Sequence record: NC_062582.1
DNA length: 64,000 nucleotides
Reading direction: 5' to 3' (one strand)
In this document: in pieces, positions 4,362 through 50,083 of the stretch
Layout: the number at the start of each line of letters is the position of its first letter
How positions within the stretch are numbered: the first letter of the stretch is position 1
Program-made: the position numbers and the translations under genes
Notes under the pieces: generated by a model
Told to the model about the DNA's origin: nothing
Database searches by the model: none
What the model saw: only the letters and a program-made list of their open reading frames with translations

Positions 4362-4778
4362 ATGAAACTCTATCGTTGGTTGAATGACAAAGGGAATGGT
4401 CTCTATCAGGATAACTTCCCTAGTCGTGTTGGTTTGGTCTTTGGTGGTCCAGACTCACATGAAGATATCCCTTATTACCAACCGCCTCTTTACGAAGACG
4501 TGCGTGGTTTTAAGTTTGAAGAACTCGATCGTTATTTCTGTGCGTTCCTTTCCATTGATCAGATGATGTCTTGGTTCAGGGAAATTGACACTTTATCCAT
4601 CTTCGTGGAAGGTGGGAAGCTTATGGAAATTACAATCGAAGACCAGTATGTCTTATCTGGTCGACACCAATGTATCTATCGTAAATACCGTTCTACTGAA
4701 GAACGTGAAATAACGGTAGATGAATTTATCGACTTGGCAGATACAGCCGAAAATAAATGGAGAAAGTTTTGGGACTAA
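4362..4778 (+). CDS. hypothetical protein, possible ADP-ribosyltransferase-like fold
   Basis: LYR..G.GLY, FCAFLS.DQM..WF, late Q pattern. Confidence 0.75.
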   Translation: MKLYRWLNDKGNGLYQDNFPSRVGLVFGGPDSHEDIPYYQPPLYEDVRGFKFEELDRYFCAFLSIDQMMSWFREIDTLSIFVEGGKLMEITIEDQYVLSGRHQCIYRKYRSTEEREITVDEFIDLADTAENKWRKFWD

Positions 4779-5002
4779 AAGATCGCTGGGAATTATACCG
4801 TCTTAATAAACGTCGATTCGAAACCAATCGCGTTAAGACCGGCAAAGTTAAAGGTACTTGTACTGACCTTTTCTTTGTTACTCTAATCACGGTTCTGGAG
4901 GAATGGGAAGTTGAAACCTGTCTCCCTTCGCATGACATAACCGATGAGTATCACAAAGAATGGGTTGTCTCTGATCGTTCCTGGTATTGGTTTTGGGAGT
5001 AA
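4757..5002 (+). CDS. hypothetical protein
   Basis: ORF in operon. Confidence 0.6.
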   Translation: MEKVLGLKDRWELYRLNKRRFETNRVKTGKVKGTCTDLFFVTLITVLEEWEVETCLPSHDITDEYHKEWVVSDRSWYWFWE

Positions 5003-5008
5003 TACAAA

Positions 5009-5257
5009 ATGTCTAAAGTAATTTTTATTGCAACACTTATCGGCACTGCTTCTAACAATGTATCACCCACCACAGAAACCCTTAGGGTTGATTTCACCCA
5101 AGGTTTTGACCTGATGGATAAATGCCGTAAGTTCGAACAAAGCTATCACGTCGGTAATGGTTCTATTGTTAGTCGTGGTAACAAACTGGTCAGCCGCTAC
5201 GTCGTCGAAGGTAGCAAAATAGTAACTCTTGAAACCATGTGTTTGGAACAAGAATAA
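5009..5257 (+). CDS. small putative exported two-Cys protein
   Basis: hydrophobic N-terminus, two Cys; resembles the 30133-31002 trio. Confidence 0.7.
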   Translation: MSKVIFIATLIGTASNNVSPTTETLRVDFTQGFDLMDKCRKFEQSYHVGNGSIVSRGNKLVSRYVVEGSKIVTLETMCLEQE

Positions 5258-5283
5258 CCTAAACTTTTCTCAGGAAGATAAAT

Positions 5284-5817
5284 ATGAAAACTGCAAATCT
5301 TTCCACCCTGAACGATCATTACGCCATTGAAATCACTGGTGAAGATGGTCCGGAATATTGGGCACATAGTGATATTTACATTGCGGATATTACCCATGAG
5401 TTTGTTGGGAAATTCAACAAGCAATCTGTGGGGCACTGGTTGGACTGGCATACTCGACGCGGTATTAATGCGCGGGCGGTTCCAGTAAGTCATCATCACA
5501 CTCTGGTAAAATGGCCAGATTATGGTTGGGTGGTAATTGTTCCAAATGGTCGTGAATCGTCCGTCCATAAAGCGTACCTTGCCGGTACTTATGGTGATGG
5601 TTGGTTCATGAAAGATGAGGGCACTACTGAACGTCTTCTTTGCATGAACATTGGCGAATATGTCTATTGGGAGATGAAAGTCCAAGGTAAGAACCTTGGT
5701 GACTTAACGGTCATCGTTGAAGGTGATCGTCATGTGGCTAATTCTTTTAATATCCCGACTGATTCTGATCTCAGTTATCAGTTTACTTTTGATGTAAATC
5801 CAGTGGAACTAGTTTAA
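5284..5817 (+). CDS. hypothetical protein
   Basis: AGGA SD; ORF. Confidence 0.8.
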   Translation: MKTANLSTLNDHYAIEITGEDGPEYWAHSDIYIADITHEFVGKFNKQSVGHWLDWHTRRGINARAVPVSHHHTLVKWPDYGWVVIVPNGRESSVHKAYLAGTYGDGWFMKDEGTTERLLCMNIGEYVYWEMKVQGKNLGDLTVIVEGDRHVANSFNIPTDSDLSYQFTFDVNPVELV

Positions 5818-45293: not shown

Positions 45294-45620
45294 ATGAAGC
45301 TAATTAATGTACCGTTGCAATGTCTGGTAAATGACATCGGTTATGTAATCGGTGCGGATGGTAGTCATGGTACTATCACTGGCTTCACTACTGACCCAGA
45401 TGGTCGACACTTCCAACAGAACATTCACATCGAATGGGTTGATGGTCGTAAGGCTACTTACCTTTATCCCGAAGAGGTAGGTAGTCTTAAAGTCGATACC
45501 AAATACCACGAAAGTAATCTAACTTCGTGGATCAAGCATCACGTCAATCGAATGAATCGTCATATCAAGTTCCTCAAGAAAAGCATTGTGTCTCTTAACG
45601 AAGATGACCGTTACGAATAA
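45294..45620 (+). CDS. hypothetical protein
   Basis: ORF in operon. Confidence 0.75.
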   Translation: MKLINVPLQCLVNDIGYVIGADGSHGTITGFTTDPDGRHFQQNIHIEWVDGRKATYLYPEEVGSLKVDTKYHESNLTSWIKHHVNRMNRHIKFLKKSIVSLNEDDRYE

Positions 45621-45698
45621 TAAAATACTCGGAGTGCATATCTAATACAAGCAGTGCCGTCATGGATTGCTTAAGCTTTATTCCTTGAGGATTCGACA

Positions 45699-45908
45699 AT
45701 GACCACATCTATTGAATGGGGAACTGTATTTCCCGACTATGTGATCCGTATTAACAAGTCTGTTTATATTGGTCAGGATTGGTTTTTAGAGTGTACCGAT
45801 AACATTGGCGTACATGCACGTGCAGCTATTCGTGTTGTACAACGTGTTAATACTGGTAGTACGGTTCGTGAAATCACAGTCCGAAAAGTTAAGGACGTAA
45901 ACATGTAA
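45699..45908 (+). CDS. small hypothetical
   Basis: GAGG SD. Confidence 0.7.
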   Translation: MTTSIEWGTVFPDYVIRINKSVYIGQDWFLECTDNIGVHARAAIRVVQRVNTGSTVREITVRKVKDVNM

Positions 45909-45987
45909 TACAATATGTAGTTACTAACGTGACTGCATACGACACTTGCCAAGTGTCTTAAAGATCTATTATGCGTCAAGCATTTAC

Positions 45988-46020
45988 AATAGAAAAAATT
46001 CTAGATTTATATTACTACTG
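45988..46020 (+). promoter_or_regulatory. early promoter of chimallin
   Basis: AATAGAAAAAATTCTAGATTTATATTAC; TATATTAC 46008-46015. Confidence 0.85.
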
Positions 46021-46047
46021 TGATCTTAAACCAGTAGTGTTTAGATC

Positions 46048-46065
46048 TTAACTTGATCAAGTTAA
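46048..46065. promoter_or_regulatory. perfect 18-bp palindrome, candidate operator
   Basis: TTAACTTGATCAAGTTAA is its own reverse complement. Confidence 0.55.
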
Positions 46066-46098
46066 AAAACCAAATATCTCTGTACAGGAAAAAACACA

Positions 46099-47985
46099 AT
46101 GATTCGTGATCTCGATAGCAACACCGCTTCCCAGCAACAAGCTCCAGCTCCTAAAGCACAACAAGTTCAGCAACCAACACAAGGTCAACCAAAAATGCAA
46201 CAGCAACAATCGCAACAAGCAGGTATCGGTTCTCTGAACAGCCTGTTCCAACGTTCGGGTCGTACTGAAGGTGGCGACGCTCGTTCGGCTGAAGCTCTCC
46301 AGATTCTGAACCGTCTGAAAGAAGAAGCTGTAGCTACTCAAGACCTGCAAAACGATTTCACTATCCTGCGATTCGATCGTGACCAAAACCAAGTAGGTTG
46401 GTCGTCGCTGCTGGTAGTTAAGAAACAAGTTATCGGTGGTGAGCCGGTTCTGGCTGTTCGTCCTCTGTTGATGCCTAACGCTGCAATCCAACTGCCTGTT
46501 CGTAAAGTACAGGTTAGCCAAGGCATGCACGTTGAGACTGTCGACGTAGAAGTTGACGTACAATCGGTATTCAGTCAGAAGTACTGGAACCGTGTTGTTG
46601 ACTACGTTAAGAGCCAGCTGGGTCTGCCTAGCGCTAAAGTCGTACTGACTTCTGCTTACCCAATTCCAGCTGACTTCTCTCTGAAAGAAGAGCTGATCCT
46701 GAAAGCCGTTCTGGTTAAGTCGGTTAACGCATGTGATGACATGCTGCAACGTCATTCCGGCGAAGAAGCTTTCAGCGTAGCACTGTTGAAAGGCAGTGAT
46801 GAGTACCTGACCGCTAAGATCGATACTCGTGAACAACCTGTTCTGGACGTACTGGGTAACCCAATCCGTTCCGACGCAGTTATCTCTCTGGCACGTACCC
46901 GTAAGAACGGTAATCAAGAGAACGAGTTCTACGAAGCTGATACCCAGCTGAACCAGACCTCGGTTGCTATCGACGTTGAATACAACGGCCAGCCTGCTCA
47001 GCAACAAAACATGTTCGGCATTCAACAACAGCAGTTCCAACCTCCATTCACTGCTACCGTAACCGTTACTGATGTACGTAACGCTCCATGGATCAAGGCT
47101 AACACTCCAGAGATGTATCTGTTGGGTCTGTCTAACGCATTCCGTGTAACCGGTGGTTCTGCTTGGGCTAAAGGTTTCCTGCCACGTGTTGGTGTTGCCA
47201 AAGACCTGCGTGATCCAGGTGCTCTGGGCTGGTTGTCGAAACTGGCTGCTAAGATCGATACCAAAACTGATAAGTTCAAAGATGAACACTTCATCGAACT
47301 GATCAACACCATGATCCAACCGCACCCAGTGTTCCAGATCGATCTGGATCGCATGAGCGAAAACGGTGCTATCGAAGGTATGCTGATCGATGCTGCTGGC
47401 GGTCCTAACCAACAGCGTGCAACTGCGTTCATCATCAAGTCGATCAACAACCTGATCGGTGGTGGTTTCGAGAAGTACTTCGACCACACTACTCAAGCTC
47501 TGCTGAGCCTGACTGGTCAAGAAATCCAGAAAGGTTTCTACCAGGATTCTGAAGGTGAGAAGCGCGACAAGCGTGATCTGGGTACCCTGGGTGCACTGAA
47601 CTCTTCGGAAGGTAACCTGCAAGAGTGGATGAACTGGTACGGTTCGCAACTGAACGGTAACATTCACCCGGCACTGCGTGCTAAGCAATCTCGCAACTAC
47701 GATAAGCAATACCTGGGCGCTTCGGTAACTTACACCGGTACTACCGCTGTTCGTGCTGTACTGAACCCTAAACTCGTAGAAGCACTGGATGCTGCACTGA
47801 CTGCTGCTGGTCTGCTCGTAGCTATGGATAACATCGGTAACCTGGCTGGCGGTCAACGCTTCCAAGGTAACCAGTCGATTCAGAACTTCGCTGTATCTGG
47901 TTCGGCTCACGTTGTTAACACCATGCAAACCGGTAACGGTTTCCAGAACACCTTCGGCCAGCAAGGCCCTGGTTCGTTCTACTAA
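46099..47985 (+). CDS. chmA: chimallin, phage nucleus shell protein (phiKZ gp54 / 201phi2-1 gp105-like)
   Basis: Q-rich N-term, GGDARS.EAL, ILRFDRDQ.QVGWSSL, KSVNACDD, QSRNYD.QYLG, terminal GP.SFY match 201phi2-1 gp105 as recalled. Confidence 0.96.
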   Translation: MIRDLDSNTASQQQAPAPKAQQVQQPTQGQPKMQQQQSQQAGIGSLNSLFQRSGRTEGGDARSAEALQILNRLKEEAVATQDLQNDFTILRFDRDQNQVGWSSLLVVKKQVIGGEPVLAVRPLLMPNAAIQLPVRKVQVSQGMHVETVDVEVDVQSVFSQKYWNRVVDYVKSQLGLPSAKVVLTSAYPIPADFSLKEELILKAVLVKSVNACDDMLQRHSGEEAFSVALLKGSDEYLTAKIDTREQPVLDVLGNPIRSDAVISLARTRKNGNQENEFYEADTQLNQTSVAIDVEYNGQPAQQQNMFGIQQQQFQPPFTATVTVTDVRNAPWIKANTPEMYLLGLSNAFRVTGGSAWAKGFLPRVGVAKDLRDPGALGWLSKLAAKIDTKTDKFKDEHFIELINTMIQPHPVFQIDLDRMSENGAIEGMLIDAAGGPNQQRATAFIIKSINNLIGGGFEKYFDHTTQALLSLTGQEIQKGFYQDSEGEKRDKRDLGTLGALNSSEGNLQEWMNWYGSQLNGNIHPALRAKQSRNYDKQYLGASVTYTGTTAVRAVLNPKLVEALDAALTAAGLLVAMDNIGNLAGGQRFQGNQSIQNFAVSGSAHVVNTMQTGNGFQNTFGQQGPGSFY

Positions 47986-47996
47986 GTTGTAACTAA

Positions 47997-48214
47997 GGTG
48001 GGATCGAAAGGTCCCATCTATTGTAGCCCACGACAAGCCAAAGACCCAACTGAACCCCGCTAATATATCTGCGCTAATAGGGTGAAGGTTGTAACATTCA
48101 AAGTGCACGGTATCGTGTAGGTTGAAGGCAGTCGTTAATTAGATCGCTTTATCCTAACGGAAGCTGCACCCTTTATTGGTGTGGCTTGTGGTCAACACTA
48201 CTCACGAAAGTGAG
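47997..48214 (+). ncRNA. candidate multi-branch structured RNA in chmA 3-prime region
   Basis: 8-bp closing helix 48033-40/48182-89 enclosing four hairpin arms, flanked by two GAAA-tetraloop hairpins. Confidence 0.6.
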
Positions 48215-48217
48215 ACC

Positions 48218-48247
48218 CATAGGCAATCTCTTCGGAGGTTGCTTATG
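48218..48247 (+). terminator. hairpin
   Basis: CATAGGCAATCTC-TTCG-GAGGTTGCTTATG. Confidence 0.75.
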
Positions 48248-48269
48248 TCCTTAATTGTCGGAGATAAAA

Positions 48270-48542
48270 ATGTCTGAGATTCAACCAGTTCTGAAAGAGT
48301 TCCTGAAAACCGTTGGTGCCTCTATCGATGAAACGATTGCCACTAGCACCGTACAAGGTGTTGCTGATTACGAACGTGGTGTTAAAGATGGTGCGCTTGG
48401 TTTGGCAGACCAACTGCAAAGCGCAGAATACACTATCACCGATAAAGAAGGCGCTATTGTGAAGACCGAACCTGAAGGTGAAGTAACGCCTGTGTTCAGT
48501 TCCGTATTCCTGAGTGATGTATGGAAAGACCCAAGTAACTGA
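48270..48542 (+). CDS. small acidic hypothetical
   Basis: GGAG SD; flanked by hairpins. Confidence 0.75.
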   Translation: MSEIQPVLKEFLKTVGASIDETIATSTVQGVADYERGVKDGALGLADQLQSAEYTITDKEGAIVKTEPEGEVTPVFSSVFLSDVWKDPSN

Positions 48543-48560
48543 TACATGATTTAATGAATG

Positions 48561-48600
48561 GTGCTCCCTTCGGGGAGCGCTGTTTATATCTTTTTTTGTT
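48561..48600 (+). terminator. hairpin
   Basis: GTGCTCCC-TTCG-GGGAGCGC then T-rich. Confidence 0.7.
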
Positions 48601-48619
48601 TGCTGAAATAGGTAAGAGA

Positions 48620-50083
48620 ATGGGACTATACACTGAAGTAGTTGGTCATGATGACATGCATGATAACTTTAAAGGTAAGATCATTTATGCGAATGACTTT
48701 GCCACTAACACAGCAGAGGGTAAAGAAAGCTTTCAGCGTCACCTGTATTCCCACTATCAAGATGCCGATGCAATTGAAAACAGCGCAAGTTGTGAATGTG
48801 AGGCGATGACCCTTGCACACGACATTGGTGTGATCTGTGACAACTGTGGCCATCCGGTTGTATCTACTTCCAACCGCCCAATTGTACCATCCATGTGGTT
48901 GCGTGCACCAAACGGTGTTCCACGCATGATCTCTCCATTGTTGTTGATCATGTTGTCTGGTTATATGTCCATGAAGGAATTCAACTTCCTGGAATATCTA
49001 ATCAATACATCGTATCTATTTGACTATGATGAAATCGTATCGAAAGAAACAAAACGTAAACTGGACAAGTTGTTGCAGAAGAACTTCCCACGTGGGTTGA
49101 ATAACTTCGTTCAGAACTTTGATGAGATCTTCCAGTTCTTGCTGGATTCGAATATCATCAATAATAACAAAGCTGACATGAATGCGTTTGTACAAGCAAA
49201 CAAACATAAACTGTTTCCTCGTCACATTCCTATTCCATCTAAGTTGTGCTTCGTTGTTGAGTCGACTACATCTGGTTCGTATATCGATAAACCAATTGCA
49301 CCAGCTATTGATGCAGTGTTGACGTTTACCAGTATTGACCATAGCCCGATCCCACTGAAACCACAAACCGTTCAGAACCGTGTTGCAGGCGCTTTGCTTA
49401 AGATTGCAGAGTTCCATATCAACTACATCAAATCGCGTCTTGCACAGAAGCCTGGGTTGATTCGACGACATGTATTGGGCGGTCGTTTGAACCTAACTGC
49501 TCGTGGTGTAATTACTTCGATCAGTGACCCGCATGATTATGATGAACTGCATATTCCTTGGGGCATGGCATGTCAATTGCTTAAAGCGCATTTGATTAAC
49601 AAGCTCAAGCGGAAAATGCGATGGACTACTCGTAAGTGTATGTCTCACATCTATGCACACGTATTGCAATACTGCCCGATCCTTGATGAATGCTTTAAAG
49701 AACTCGTTAAGGAATCGAAGTATAAAGGTCTGGCATGTACGTTCCACCGAAACCCGACTTTGCAACGCGGTAGTACGCAGCGGTTCTTCATCACGATCAT
49801 CAAACCTGATCTGGGTGACAACTCGATCAGTATGTCTGTAATCTGTCTGAAGGCTCCTAACGCCGACTTCGACGGAGATCAGTTGAACCTTACCTTGTTG
49901 CCAGACAATTACCTTGCAGATGCTTGTGAGGCTATTGCACCGCACACATGGGTACTCTCTACAGATGATCCGCATGAGATCTCTGGTAACCTCGAACTAC
50001 AAGGACCGGTCGTTGAGACCGTGGTAAACTTTGCACATGAAGACTATCTCCCAAGCCTCGAAGATTGGTTGGCTGGAAAGTAA
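48620..50083 (+). CDS. non-virion RNA polymerase beta-prime-like subunit (phiKZ gp55-like)
   Basis: Zn-binding CxC..CxxC, RNPTL, catalytic APNADFDGDQ; follows chmA. Confidence 0.93.
   Translation: MGLYTEVVGHDDMHDNFKGKIIYANDFATNTAEGKESFQRHLYSHYQDADAIENSASCECEAMTLAHDIGVICDNCGHPVVSTSNRPIVPSMWLRAPNGVPRMISPLLLIMLSGYMSMKEFNFLEYLINTSYLFDYDEIVSKETKRKLDKLLQKNFPRGLNNFVQNFDEIFQFLLDSNIINNNKADMNAFVQANKHKLFPRHIPIPSKLCFVVESTTSGSYIDKPIAPAIDAVLTFTSIDHSPIPLKPQTVQNRVAGALLKIAEFHINYIKSRLAQKPGLIRRHVLGGRLNLTARGVITSISDPHDYDELHIPWGMACQLLKAHLINKLKRKMRWTTRKCMSHIYAHVLQYCPILDECFKELVKESKYKGLACTFHRNPTLQRGSTQRFFITIIKPDLGDNSISMSVICLKAPNADFDGDQLNLTLLPDNYLADACEAIAPHTWVLSTDDPHEISGNLELQGPVVETVVNFAHEDYLPSLEDWLAGK

Follow-up and report, generated by a model that had tools for sequence, protein, structure and literature searches.

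Structured RNA modules, including a covariation-supported three-way junction, downstream of chmA, the chimallin gene, in Pseudomonas phage Phabio and its relatives

In infections by nucleus-forming jumbo phages, no product is earlier or more abundant than chimallin, whose gene is followed by one for a polymerase subunit; that polymerase drives the rest of the infection. Little is understood of how the expression of these two genes (chmA and the nvRNAP gene) is balanced, and of how early messages are dealt with. Among the RNA elements with which a region between such genes may be compared, REP-type hairpins and intra-operon terminators act as 3' stabilisers or attenuators in bacterial and phage operons, and the put RNA of phage HK022 is made up of two stem-loops near a promoter. 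Closer to the phages considered here, a small RNA has been described upstream of the gp182/gp277 tail gene in phiKZ and 201phi2-1, and two ncRNAs of PAK_P3 (ncRNA1 and ncRNA2) are 3'UTR-derived. PHIKZ054 has been described within a six-gene operon, and long-read transcriptomics of 201phi2-1 reported no promoter for the nvRNAP gene gp107 (homologous to that of Phabio), the nearest predicted early promoter being situated ~3 kb upstream, a distance that corresponds to the position of the chmA promoter. The published eCLIP of ChmC shows peaks mainly near start codons, and the chmA-downstream region is not discussed in it. No RNA element after chmA is mentioned in the phiKZ and 201phi2-1 transcriptome papers (201phi2-1 supplementary tables aside), the ChmC eCLIP study or the phiKZ transposon screen, and literature searches on Phabio retrieved no description of one.

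The stretch of DNA analysed here (the window) represents the first 64 kb (64,000 nt) of Pseudomonas phage Phabio (MF042360; NC_062582.1), which infects P. fluorescens SBW25, and its chmA locus comprises the following features:

45988..46017, + strand: early-promoter-like motif AATAGAAAAAATTCTAGATTTATATTACTA, upstream of chmA and nearly invariant in 10 divergent phages
46099..47985, + strand: chmA, encoding chimallin, the nuclear shell protein (628 aa; phrog_4795, E 4.7e-219)
48270..48542, + strand: PHABIO_83, a 90-aa ORF annotated as CDS (ATG 48270; GGAG Shine-Dalgarno at 48260)
48554..48597, + strand: terminator-like site (hairpin and T-run), past PHABIO_83 and just 5' of the nvRNAP beta' gene
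48620-50083, + strand: nvRNAP beta' gene (phrog_2987, RNA polymerase beta subunit, E 1e-188)

The positions of the chmA stop and the PHABIO_83 ATG thus delimit a gap of 284 nt (47986-48269), which lies directly after chmA, as had been proposed from the letters alone, and contains no ORF (stop codons are present in all six frames). A 683-aa open frame antisense to chmA (46057-48108, - strand), reaching the RNA region, was rejected as a chmA reading-frame artefact that represents no gene. When queried by blastn (285 nt) against 50,697 phage records, the gap matched solely Phabio itself, at one place in the genome. PF25677 was present in every ChmA homologue found. PHABIO_83 (without match in the PHROG search) has counterparts in the small ORFs that occupy the same position in the related locus L010 (E 4e-17) and in Viktualia (E 3e-10), and the succession of RNA region, small ORF and nvRNAP gene is conserved. 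All known phages possess a gap after chmA, which measures 225 nt in 201phi2-1, ~256 nt in Viktualia, 435 nt in Psa21, 391-515 nt in PS119XW, phiKZ and PhiPA3, and 87 nt (a terminator alone) in D6.

At every locus the motif AGATTTATATYA was recovered about 85-100 nt upstream of chmA, and the interval from chmA to the nvRNAP gene never contained it. By analogy with the published motifs of phiKZ and 201phi2-1, the motif at 45988-46017 is likely an early promoter, from which the transcript bearing the RNA modules described below would arise. We observed that the motif (…AGATTTATATTACTA) and an invariant palindrome in the chmA 5'UTR (ACTTGATCAAGT, 46051-46062) are conserved in 10 phages (ChmA 53-83% identical to that of Phabio), and that a promoter-like motif is also found 5' of the phiKZ chmA (L006 2796-2807). 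At the other end, 48554-48597 is the only + strand terminator-like site reported by the terminator scan in 45600-48700; it overlaps ATG 48554, the mechanical ORF start for the nvRNAP gene, for which the annotated start (48620) looks right. As the promoter-like motif is found only 5' of chmA, and in view of the operon data for 201phi2-1 and phiKZ, the structured region probably lies inside an operon, where it would separate a hugely expressed gene from an essential, less expressed one.

Folding of the gap yielded, for the + strand, a minimum free energy (MFE) of -99.2 kcal/mol (shuffle mean -73.5; z -5.32; 0/200 shuffles as stable) and, for the - strand (reverse complement), a z of -1.22, an asymmetry that recurred in each module folded alone. 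This comparison with shuffled sequence, which the sequence-only reading had put forward as a check, confirms that the + strand has RNA structure beyond chance. The G-U pairs (10/75 in the supported modular model) favour the + strand, as anticipated; the description of the gap as almost entirely paired was overstated, with 53% of its bases paired in the same model. The gap is a chain of five independently folding + strand RNA modules (H1, M1, M2, H3 and T'), gained and lost separately among the ~20 relatives compared (mostly uncultured phages from public assemblies, whose loci are designated by L numbers):

47996..48019, + strand: H1, a 10-bp hairpin with a GAAA loop, 10 nt past the chmA stop (pair probability 0.99)
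48030..48135, + strand: M1, a conserved three-way junction of 106 nt (from covariation and covariance models)
48142..48193, + strand: M2, a closing stem GAUCGC/GUGGUC (48142-47/48188-93) around a 10-bp hairpin
48161-48187, + strand: inner hairpin of M2, AAGCUGCACC-CUUUAUU-GGUGUGGCUU (pair probability 0.94)
48201..48214, + strand: H3, CUCAC-GAAA-GUGAG, followed by invariant GAC(C/U) (pair probability 0.97)
48218..48247, + strand: T', a 13-bp cUUCGg hairpin (local fold -18.3 kcal/mol)

The sequence-only reading had instead envisaged one compact five-way junction, closed by a long-range helix (48033-40/48182-89) and carrying a CTAAT/ATTAG pseudoknot. Its local building blocks were all recovered exactly where it had placed them, namely the first hairpin with its GAAA loop, the helices of arm A (CAAC/GTTG, ACCC/GGGT and CGC/GCG) and arm B (TTCAA/TTGAA and TGCACG/CGTGTA), the ACC/GGT stem, the CTCAC-GAAA-GTGAG hairpin, the cUUCGg stem and the GCTAATA repeat (copies at 48059 and 48073); moreover, the 8-bp complement ACAAGCCA/TGGCTTGT and the pairings of arm C do exist in Phabio. 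As a single fold, however, the five-way junction attains -80.9 kcal/mol, being 10 kcal/mol less stable than the modular fold derived by comparison (-91.0) and 18 less stable than the MFE (-99.2), and its closing helix, with an ensemble probability of 0.003, is not conserved and overlaps by its 3' strand (48182-89) two helices that are (the M2 hairpin and the M2 closing stem). Arm C likewise clashes with conserved helices and lacks conservation, and the ATTAG partner of the pseudoknot is not conserved in the gap alignment. Furthermore, five relatives (L010, L012, L013, L026 and L027) retain arms A and B nearly unchanged and have nothing from 48139 to the cUUCGg hairpin, which leaves the closing helix without its 3' strand, arm C without its 3' half and the fold without arm D, while L023 and L019 kept the 3' part and carry deletions within arms A and B. 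We consider a single five-way junction extremely improbable; the conserved core predicted from the sequence comparison, closed by ACGAC/GUCGU and GCC/GGC, is a three-way and not a five-way junction. Its parts are:

48030-34/48131-35, + strand: P1, ACGAC/GUCGU
48037-39/48127-29, + strand: P1b, GCC/GGC
48047-48091, + strand: arm A, with helices 47-51/87-91, 54-57/80-83 and 58-60/71-73, loop UAAUAUAUCU and 3' bulge CUAAUA
48097-48126, + strand: arm B, with helices 97-101/122-126 and 104-109/114-119 and loop GUAU
Junction strands: J1/2, AAAGACC; J2/3, UAACA in Phabio (UAAMA across relatives); J3/1, 0-2 nt

Within the 12 sequences in which M1 was aligned, 98.1% of the cells were paired (26-41% in slid controls; 0/500 shuffles as good) and 23/31 pairs were changed on both sides, which bears out the conservation and covariation in relatives that had been named beforehand as a check; for the 8 close relatives the corresponding values were 97.6% and, with slid partners, 24-37%. 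Since this 12-sequence alignment had been fitted to a covariance model, the test was repeated with plain MAFFT and RNAalifold, by which P1, arm A and arm B were recovered again (25 pairs, 18 compensatory). The changes comprise a compensatory insertion in P1 of L026 and L027 (ACGGAC/GUCCGU), the replacement of the GCC/GGC of Phabio by ACC/GGU elsewhere in P1b, and three doubly changed pairs in arm B among close relatives, in which arm A is invariant. Judged by the folding of a single sequence, P1 is a weak helix (probability 0.01 within the 285 nt), and when M1 is folded alone it is essentially part of the MFE structure. In the five sequences of the Phabio clade, 59/61 nt of J1/2, arm A and J2/3 were found invariant, as compared to 68/149 (46%) third-codon positions over the neighbouring 450 nt of chmA (pairwise identity 62-73%, same five sequences), and the sequence comparison thus indicates selection on the sequence of M1 as well as on its pairing. 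Across all 12 sequences the near-invariant positions comprise AAGA(C/A)CCA where arm A begins, UAA...CUG in its loop, UAA in its 3' bulge, UGUAA at its exit and GG in the loop of arm B; in other words, the helices tolerate compensatory change, and the junction strands, the base of arm A and the two UAA-containing loops near its tip are almost invariant. In Viktualia, L031 and L032, Watson-Crick pairs stand in place of the GA/GAA internal loop of arm A, which is therefore not the conserved feature. A kissing interaction between the loops of arm B (GGUAUC) and arm A was discarded, as it fits Phabio, L031 and Viktualia and fails in L010, L026, L027 and L035. As a separate observation, six positions of M1 (in arm B and the flanks) and the H1 loop distinguish L010 (4439-4556) from L012 (2830-2947), two contigs with the same ChmA and the same final 450 nt of chmA, arm B here changing faster than nearby synonymous sites.

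These results also bear on the view that the region has no specific function and consists of stable hairpins, terminator debris or a DNA-level signal, which would agree with the loss of modules in several lineages. Against it stand a conservation far above that of synonymous sites, compensatory changes maintained down to 53% ChmA identity, and the strand asymmetry with its G-U pairs, and we attach hardly any likelihood to it; the stability, strand specificity and compensatory changes uphold the earlier suggestion of a folded, functional-looking + strand RNA that is not merely a terminator. The further suggestion that it belongs to no known family is in agreement with a cmscan of 47500-48800 against Rfam 15 (E <= 10), which returned three weak chance matches, all outside 47986-48269, with an Rfam search of the chmA-downstream regions of 7 relatives, which returned nothing, and with ARAGORN, which predicted no tRNA or tmRNA gene in the whole window and 17 related loci. 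The conserved junction strands (7, 5 and 0-2 nt), with their hammerhead-like topology, could point to a ribozyme whose self-cleavage generates the 3' end of the chmA message; however, neither a CUGANGA nor a GAAA core (or another hammerhead or small-ribozyme core) is present in the M1 junction strands (AAAGACC, UAAMA, 0-2 nt) and no Rfam ribozyme family matched at E <= 10, leaving this origin of the 3' end with a very slight chance. Group I introns do not account for the region, Rfam Intron_gpI being absent from the chmA-downstream regions and chmA being intact. Elsewhere, PS119XW (L004 6367-6672) and phiKZ (L006 7401-7692) were noticed to carry such introns (Intron_gpI, 75.7 and 43.1 bits) within or behind their nvRNAP beta' gene, and in L019-L022 (about 4680-5308) a shortened nvRNAP ORF followed by an HNH_3 endonuclease ORF.

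The named phages are distant (ChmA <=56% identical to that of Phabio). The contigs of 12 ChmA proteins at 74-83% identity (from a protein search of public assemblies) were compared, and scanning IMG/VR and JGI metagenomes with a ChmA profile added L030-L032, L035 and L036. With R1, a covariance model of eight close M1 sequences, and with a second model, R2, M1 was detected in Viktualia (29 bits with R1) and in the metagenomic phages L031 (47), L032 (24) and L035 (20), whose ChmA proteins are only 53-58% identical to that of Phabio and in which M1 begins roughly 9-80 nt past the chmA stop. One copy was present in the 164 kb of Phabio scanned by model. The exact M1 pattern was found in Phabio only (IMG/VR, JGI metagenomes and GTDB genomes), and a looser, context-free pattern retrieved 16 stretches from IMG/VR, among which, besides Phabio, only the L031 contig scored with R2. 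The covariance models did not detect M1 in phiKZ, PhiPA3, PS119XW and Psa21, nor was it detected in L014-L017, L024, L025 and L030; 201phi2-1 and L018 have an arm-A-like hairpin only (weak scores, E 0.25 and 1.1), and D6 and L036 a terminator only. Among the contigs otherwise near-identical to deletion variants, L020-L022 have M1 intact; in L019 (2851-2928) M1 is devoid of 40 nt, lost between two TAGG(G/T)TGAAGG repeats, and in L023 (2889-2942) arms A and B are almost wholly deleted. The distribution across relatives shows M1 to be an ancient element, bound strictly to the 3' end of chmA and lost more than once, and its absence or deletion in several phages means that its role is dispensable or replaceable.

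The modules that flank M1 show patterns of their own. H1 (z -4.7 on the + strand, -0.85 on the - strand) is identical in sequence in L023, L024, L026, L027 and 201phi2-1, and its position is occupied in L010 and L019-22 by a different, 12-bp hairpin, whose G-U pairs fit the + strand only. In M2 (z -3.1 on the + strand, -1.3 on the - strand), a closing stem of the form xCCRC/GUGGx is predicted in 9 phages (2 compensatory pairs), and the inner hairpin varies in sequence with pairing kept in L015-17, L020, L023-25 and 201phi2-1 (by reading alignments and folds). H3 is present in 9 phages, with 3/4 of its predicted pairs compensatory, and deleted in L010, L019-23 and L026. T' shows compensatory changes across 9 phages and takes the position of the chmA terminator of relatives (T), where the same hairpin is followed by TTTTTTT; this U-run follows the homologous hairpin in 201phi2-1, Viktualia, phiKZ and L015-17. 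The hairpin of Phabio is followed by UAUGUCCUUAAUUG without a U-run, as throughout the Phabio clade (U-run lost, then a conserved CTTATGYCC), and the terminator scan made no call on it. Among relatives, both the hairpin at T/T' and the order of the genes are maintained.

On this sequence evidence we tentatively favour a role as a cis-acting 3' domain in the chmA-nvRNAP operon with M1 as its specific binding module, an explanation that is plausible while falling somewhat short of probable. The modules would be carried on the very abundant early chmA transcript, in an operon running into the small ORF and nvRNAP beta', and would form a 3' domain of the chmA message that works in cis: by their stability, the hairpins would bring 3'-to-5' decay to a halt and show where the chmA segment is separated from the less expressed downstream genes (by partial termination or processing at T/T'), and the invariant unpaired bases of M1 would offer a docking site for a protein (of the phage or the host, possibly the transcribing polymerase) tuning this separation, and with it stability, processing or read-through. 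In line with a linkage in cis, every M1 found adjoins chmA and none was found in other contexts (IMG/VR, JGI metagenomes and GTDB). Since the modules can be lost, the domain would modulate expression and not be essential. Against the cis-acting role, one may hold that a plain stabiliser needs no invariant loops, that the variable spacing between M1 and the T hairpin (~12 to ~110 nt, with M2 and H3 as optional modules between them) argues against tight mechanical coupling, and that M1 is dispensable or replaceable, as seen from its absence in L014-L017, L030, D6 and L036.

The invariance of single-stranded bases could also be expected of a trans-acting RNA expressed from the chmA early promoter, the 3' region or M1 being excised or persisting as a stable decay product and serving as base-pairing sRNA, as sponge of a host RNA-binding protein or as decoy for host defence. 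Such an RNA would fit the gain and loss of modules between close relatives (reminiscent of an accessory locus), the differences of L010 and L012 in arm B and the H1 loop (suggestive of fast, possibly diversifying change) and the 3'UTR-derived ncRNAs documented in other Pseudomonas phages. We nevertheless regard it as unlikely, given that no complementary conserved motif with which the 3' region might pair was found in the chmA 5'UTR, that T' of Phabio lacks the U-tail typical of Hfq-type sRNAs and that M1 never occurs away from chmA.

The location of the region, between the sole early-promoter-like motif and an nvRNAP gene that has none, and always 5' of a terminator-type hairpin, likewise recalls a controller of read-through, in which M1 and/or M2-H3 would act as a put-like RNA that modifies the phage polymerase, or as a riboswitch-type aptamer (an architecture that the three-way junction with its conserved strands resembles), and would set the passage past the T/T' hairpin and the 48554 terminator into nvRNAP beta'. 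However, no conserved alternative pairing between M1 and the terminator was seen by eye (in the sequences and single-sequence folds of L010, L026 and L031), the distance and the intervening modules vary, no Rfam riboswitch matched even at E <= 10, and phages with a terminator only exist; we hold this kind of control to be decidedly unlikely.

In phiKZ-type phages, the chmA stop and the cUUCGg terminator are separated by a different sequence of 330-450 nt, conserved and non-coding, located as follows:

L006 4762-5098: phiKZ
L004 4738-5072: PS119XW
L003 4753-5206: PhiPA3

It has a z of -2.5 against shuffles and some compensatory pairs (three sequences compared), with no Rfam match and no resemblance to M1. 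In Psa21 (L007 4762-5196) the sequence after chmA is different again, and D6, a relative of Psa21, has a terminator only. The different RNA of the phiKZ-type phages at the same position implies that a structured RNA resides there in at least two chimallivirus lineages. A bolder proposition, drawn from sequence and possible though somewhat unlikely, is that M1 represents a new structured-RNA class specific to nucleus-forming phages, which would bind a defined partner through its invariant junction and loops. If so, the partner could be a protein (a phage polymerase, or one associated with the shell or with export) or a small molecule, M1 would control the fate of the chimallin message or the early expression of the nvRNAP subunit encoded downstream, and the chmA 3' region in general would be a hotspot for regulatory RNAs, including the unrelated RNA of phiKZ, PS119XW and PhiPA3. 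In any case, a covariation-supported RNA fold fixed at the chmA 3' end constitutes a concrete, testable object, and M1 adds a candidate RNA family missing from current databases.

Compared with described systems, the region is closest in arrangement to REP-type and intra-operon hairpins, with which it shares stem-loops between strongly and weakly expressed genes of one unit and a terminator-type hairpin in last place (although T' itself, a G+C-rich hairpin without a directly following U-run, falls outside the definition of an intrinsic terminator); it departs from them by the invariant unpaired nucleotides and the deeply conserved three-way junction of M1, neither of which a simple exonuclease barrier requires. 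With the HK022 put RNA it has in common a folded cis RNA that follows a promoter and precedes terminators and, past them, essential genes, M1 being placed between the promoter-like motif and the terminator-like site; in contrast to put, M1 follows a 1.9-kb gene, and the likeness seen is one of position. Like purine-class riboswitch aptamers, M1 has a P1 that closes two hairpin arms, covarying helices (23/31) and conserved junction strands (J1/2 and J2/3 nearly invariant); unlike them, it has no Rfam match, a J3/1 of 0-2 nt and no mutually exclusive pairing seen by eye. Of the hallmarks of Hfq-type sRNAs, conserved single-stranded stretches are present and the U-tail is absent from T' of Phabio. 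Finally, the ncRNA candidates of phiKZ, 201phi2-1 and PAK_P3 resemble M1 in being conserved, structured, embedded in UTRs and defined by a neighbouring conserved gene, and differ from it in having been found from transcript ends and mostly in 5'UTRs, whereas M1 was found from covariation and lies 3' of chmA. We place M1 among the UTR-embedded structured RNAs of phages, as a previously undescribed RNA fold.
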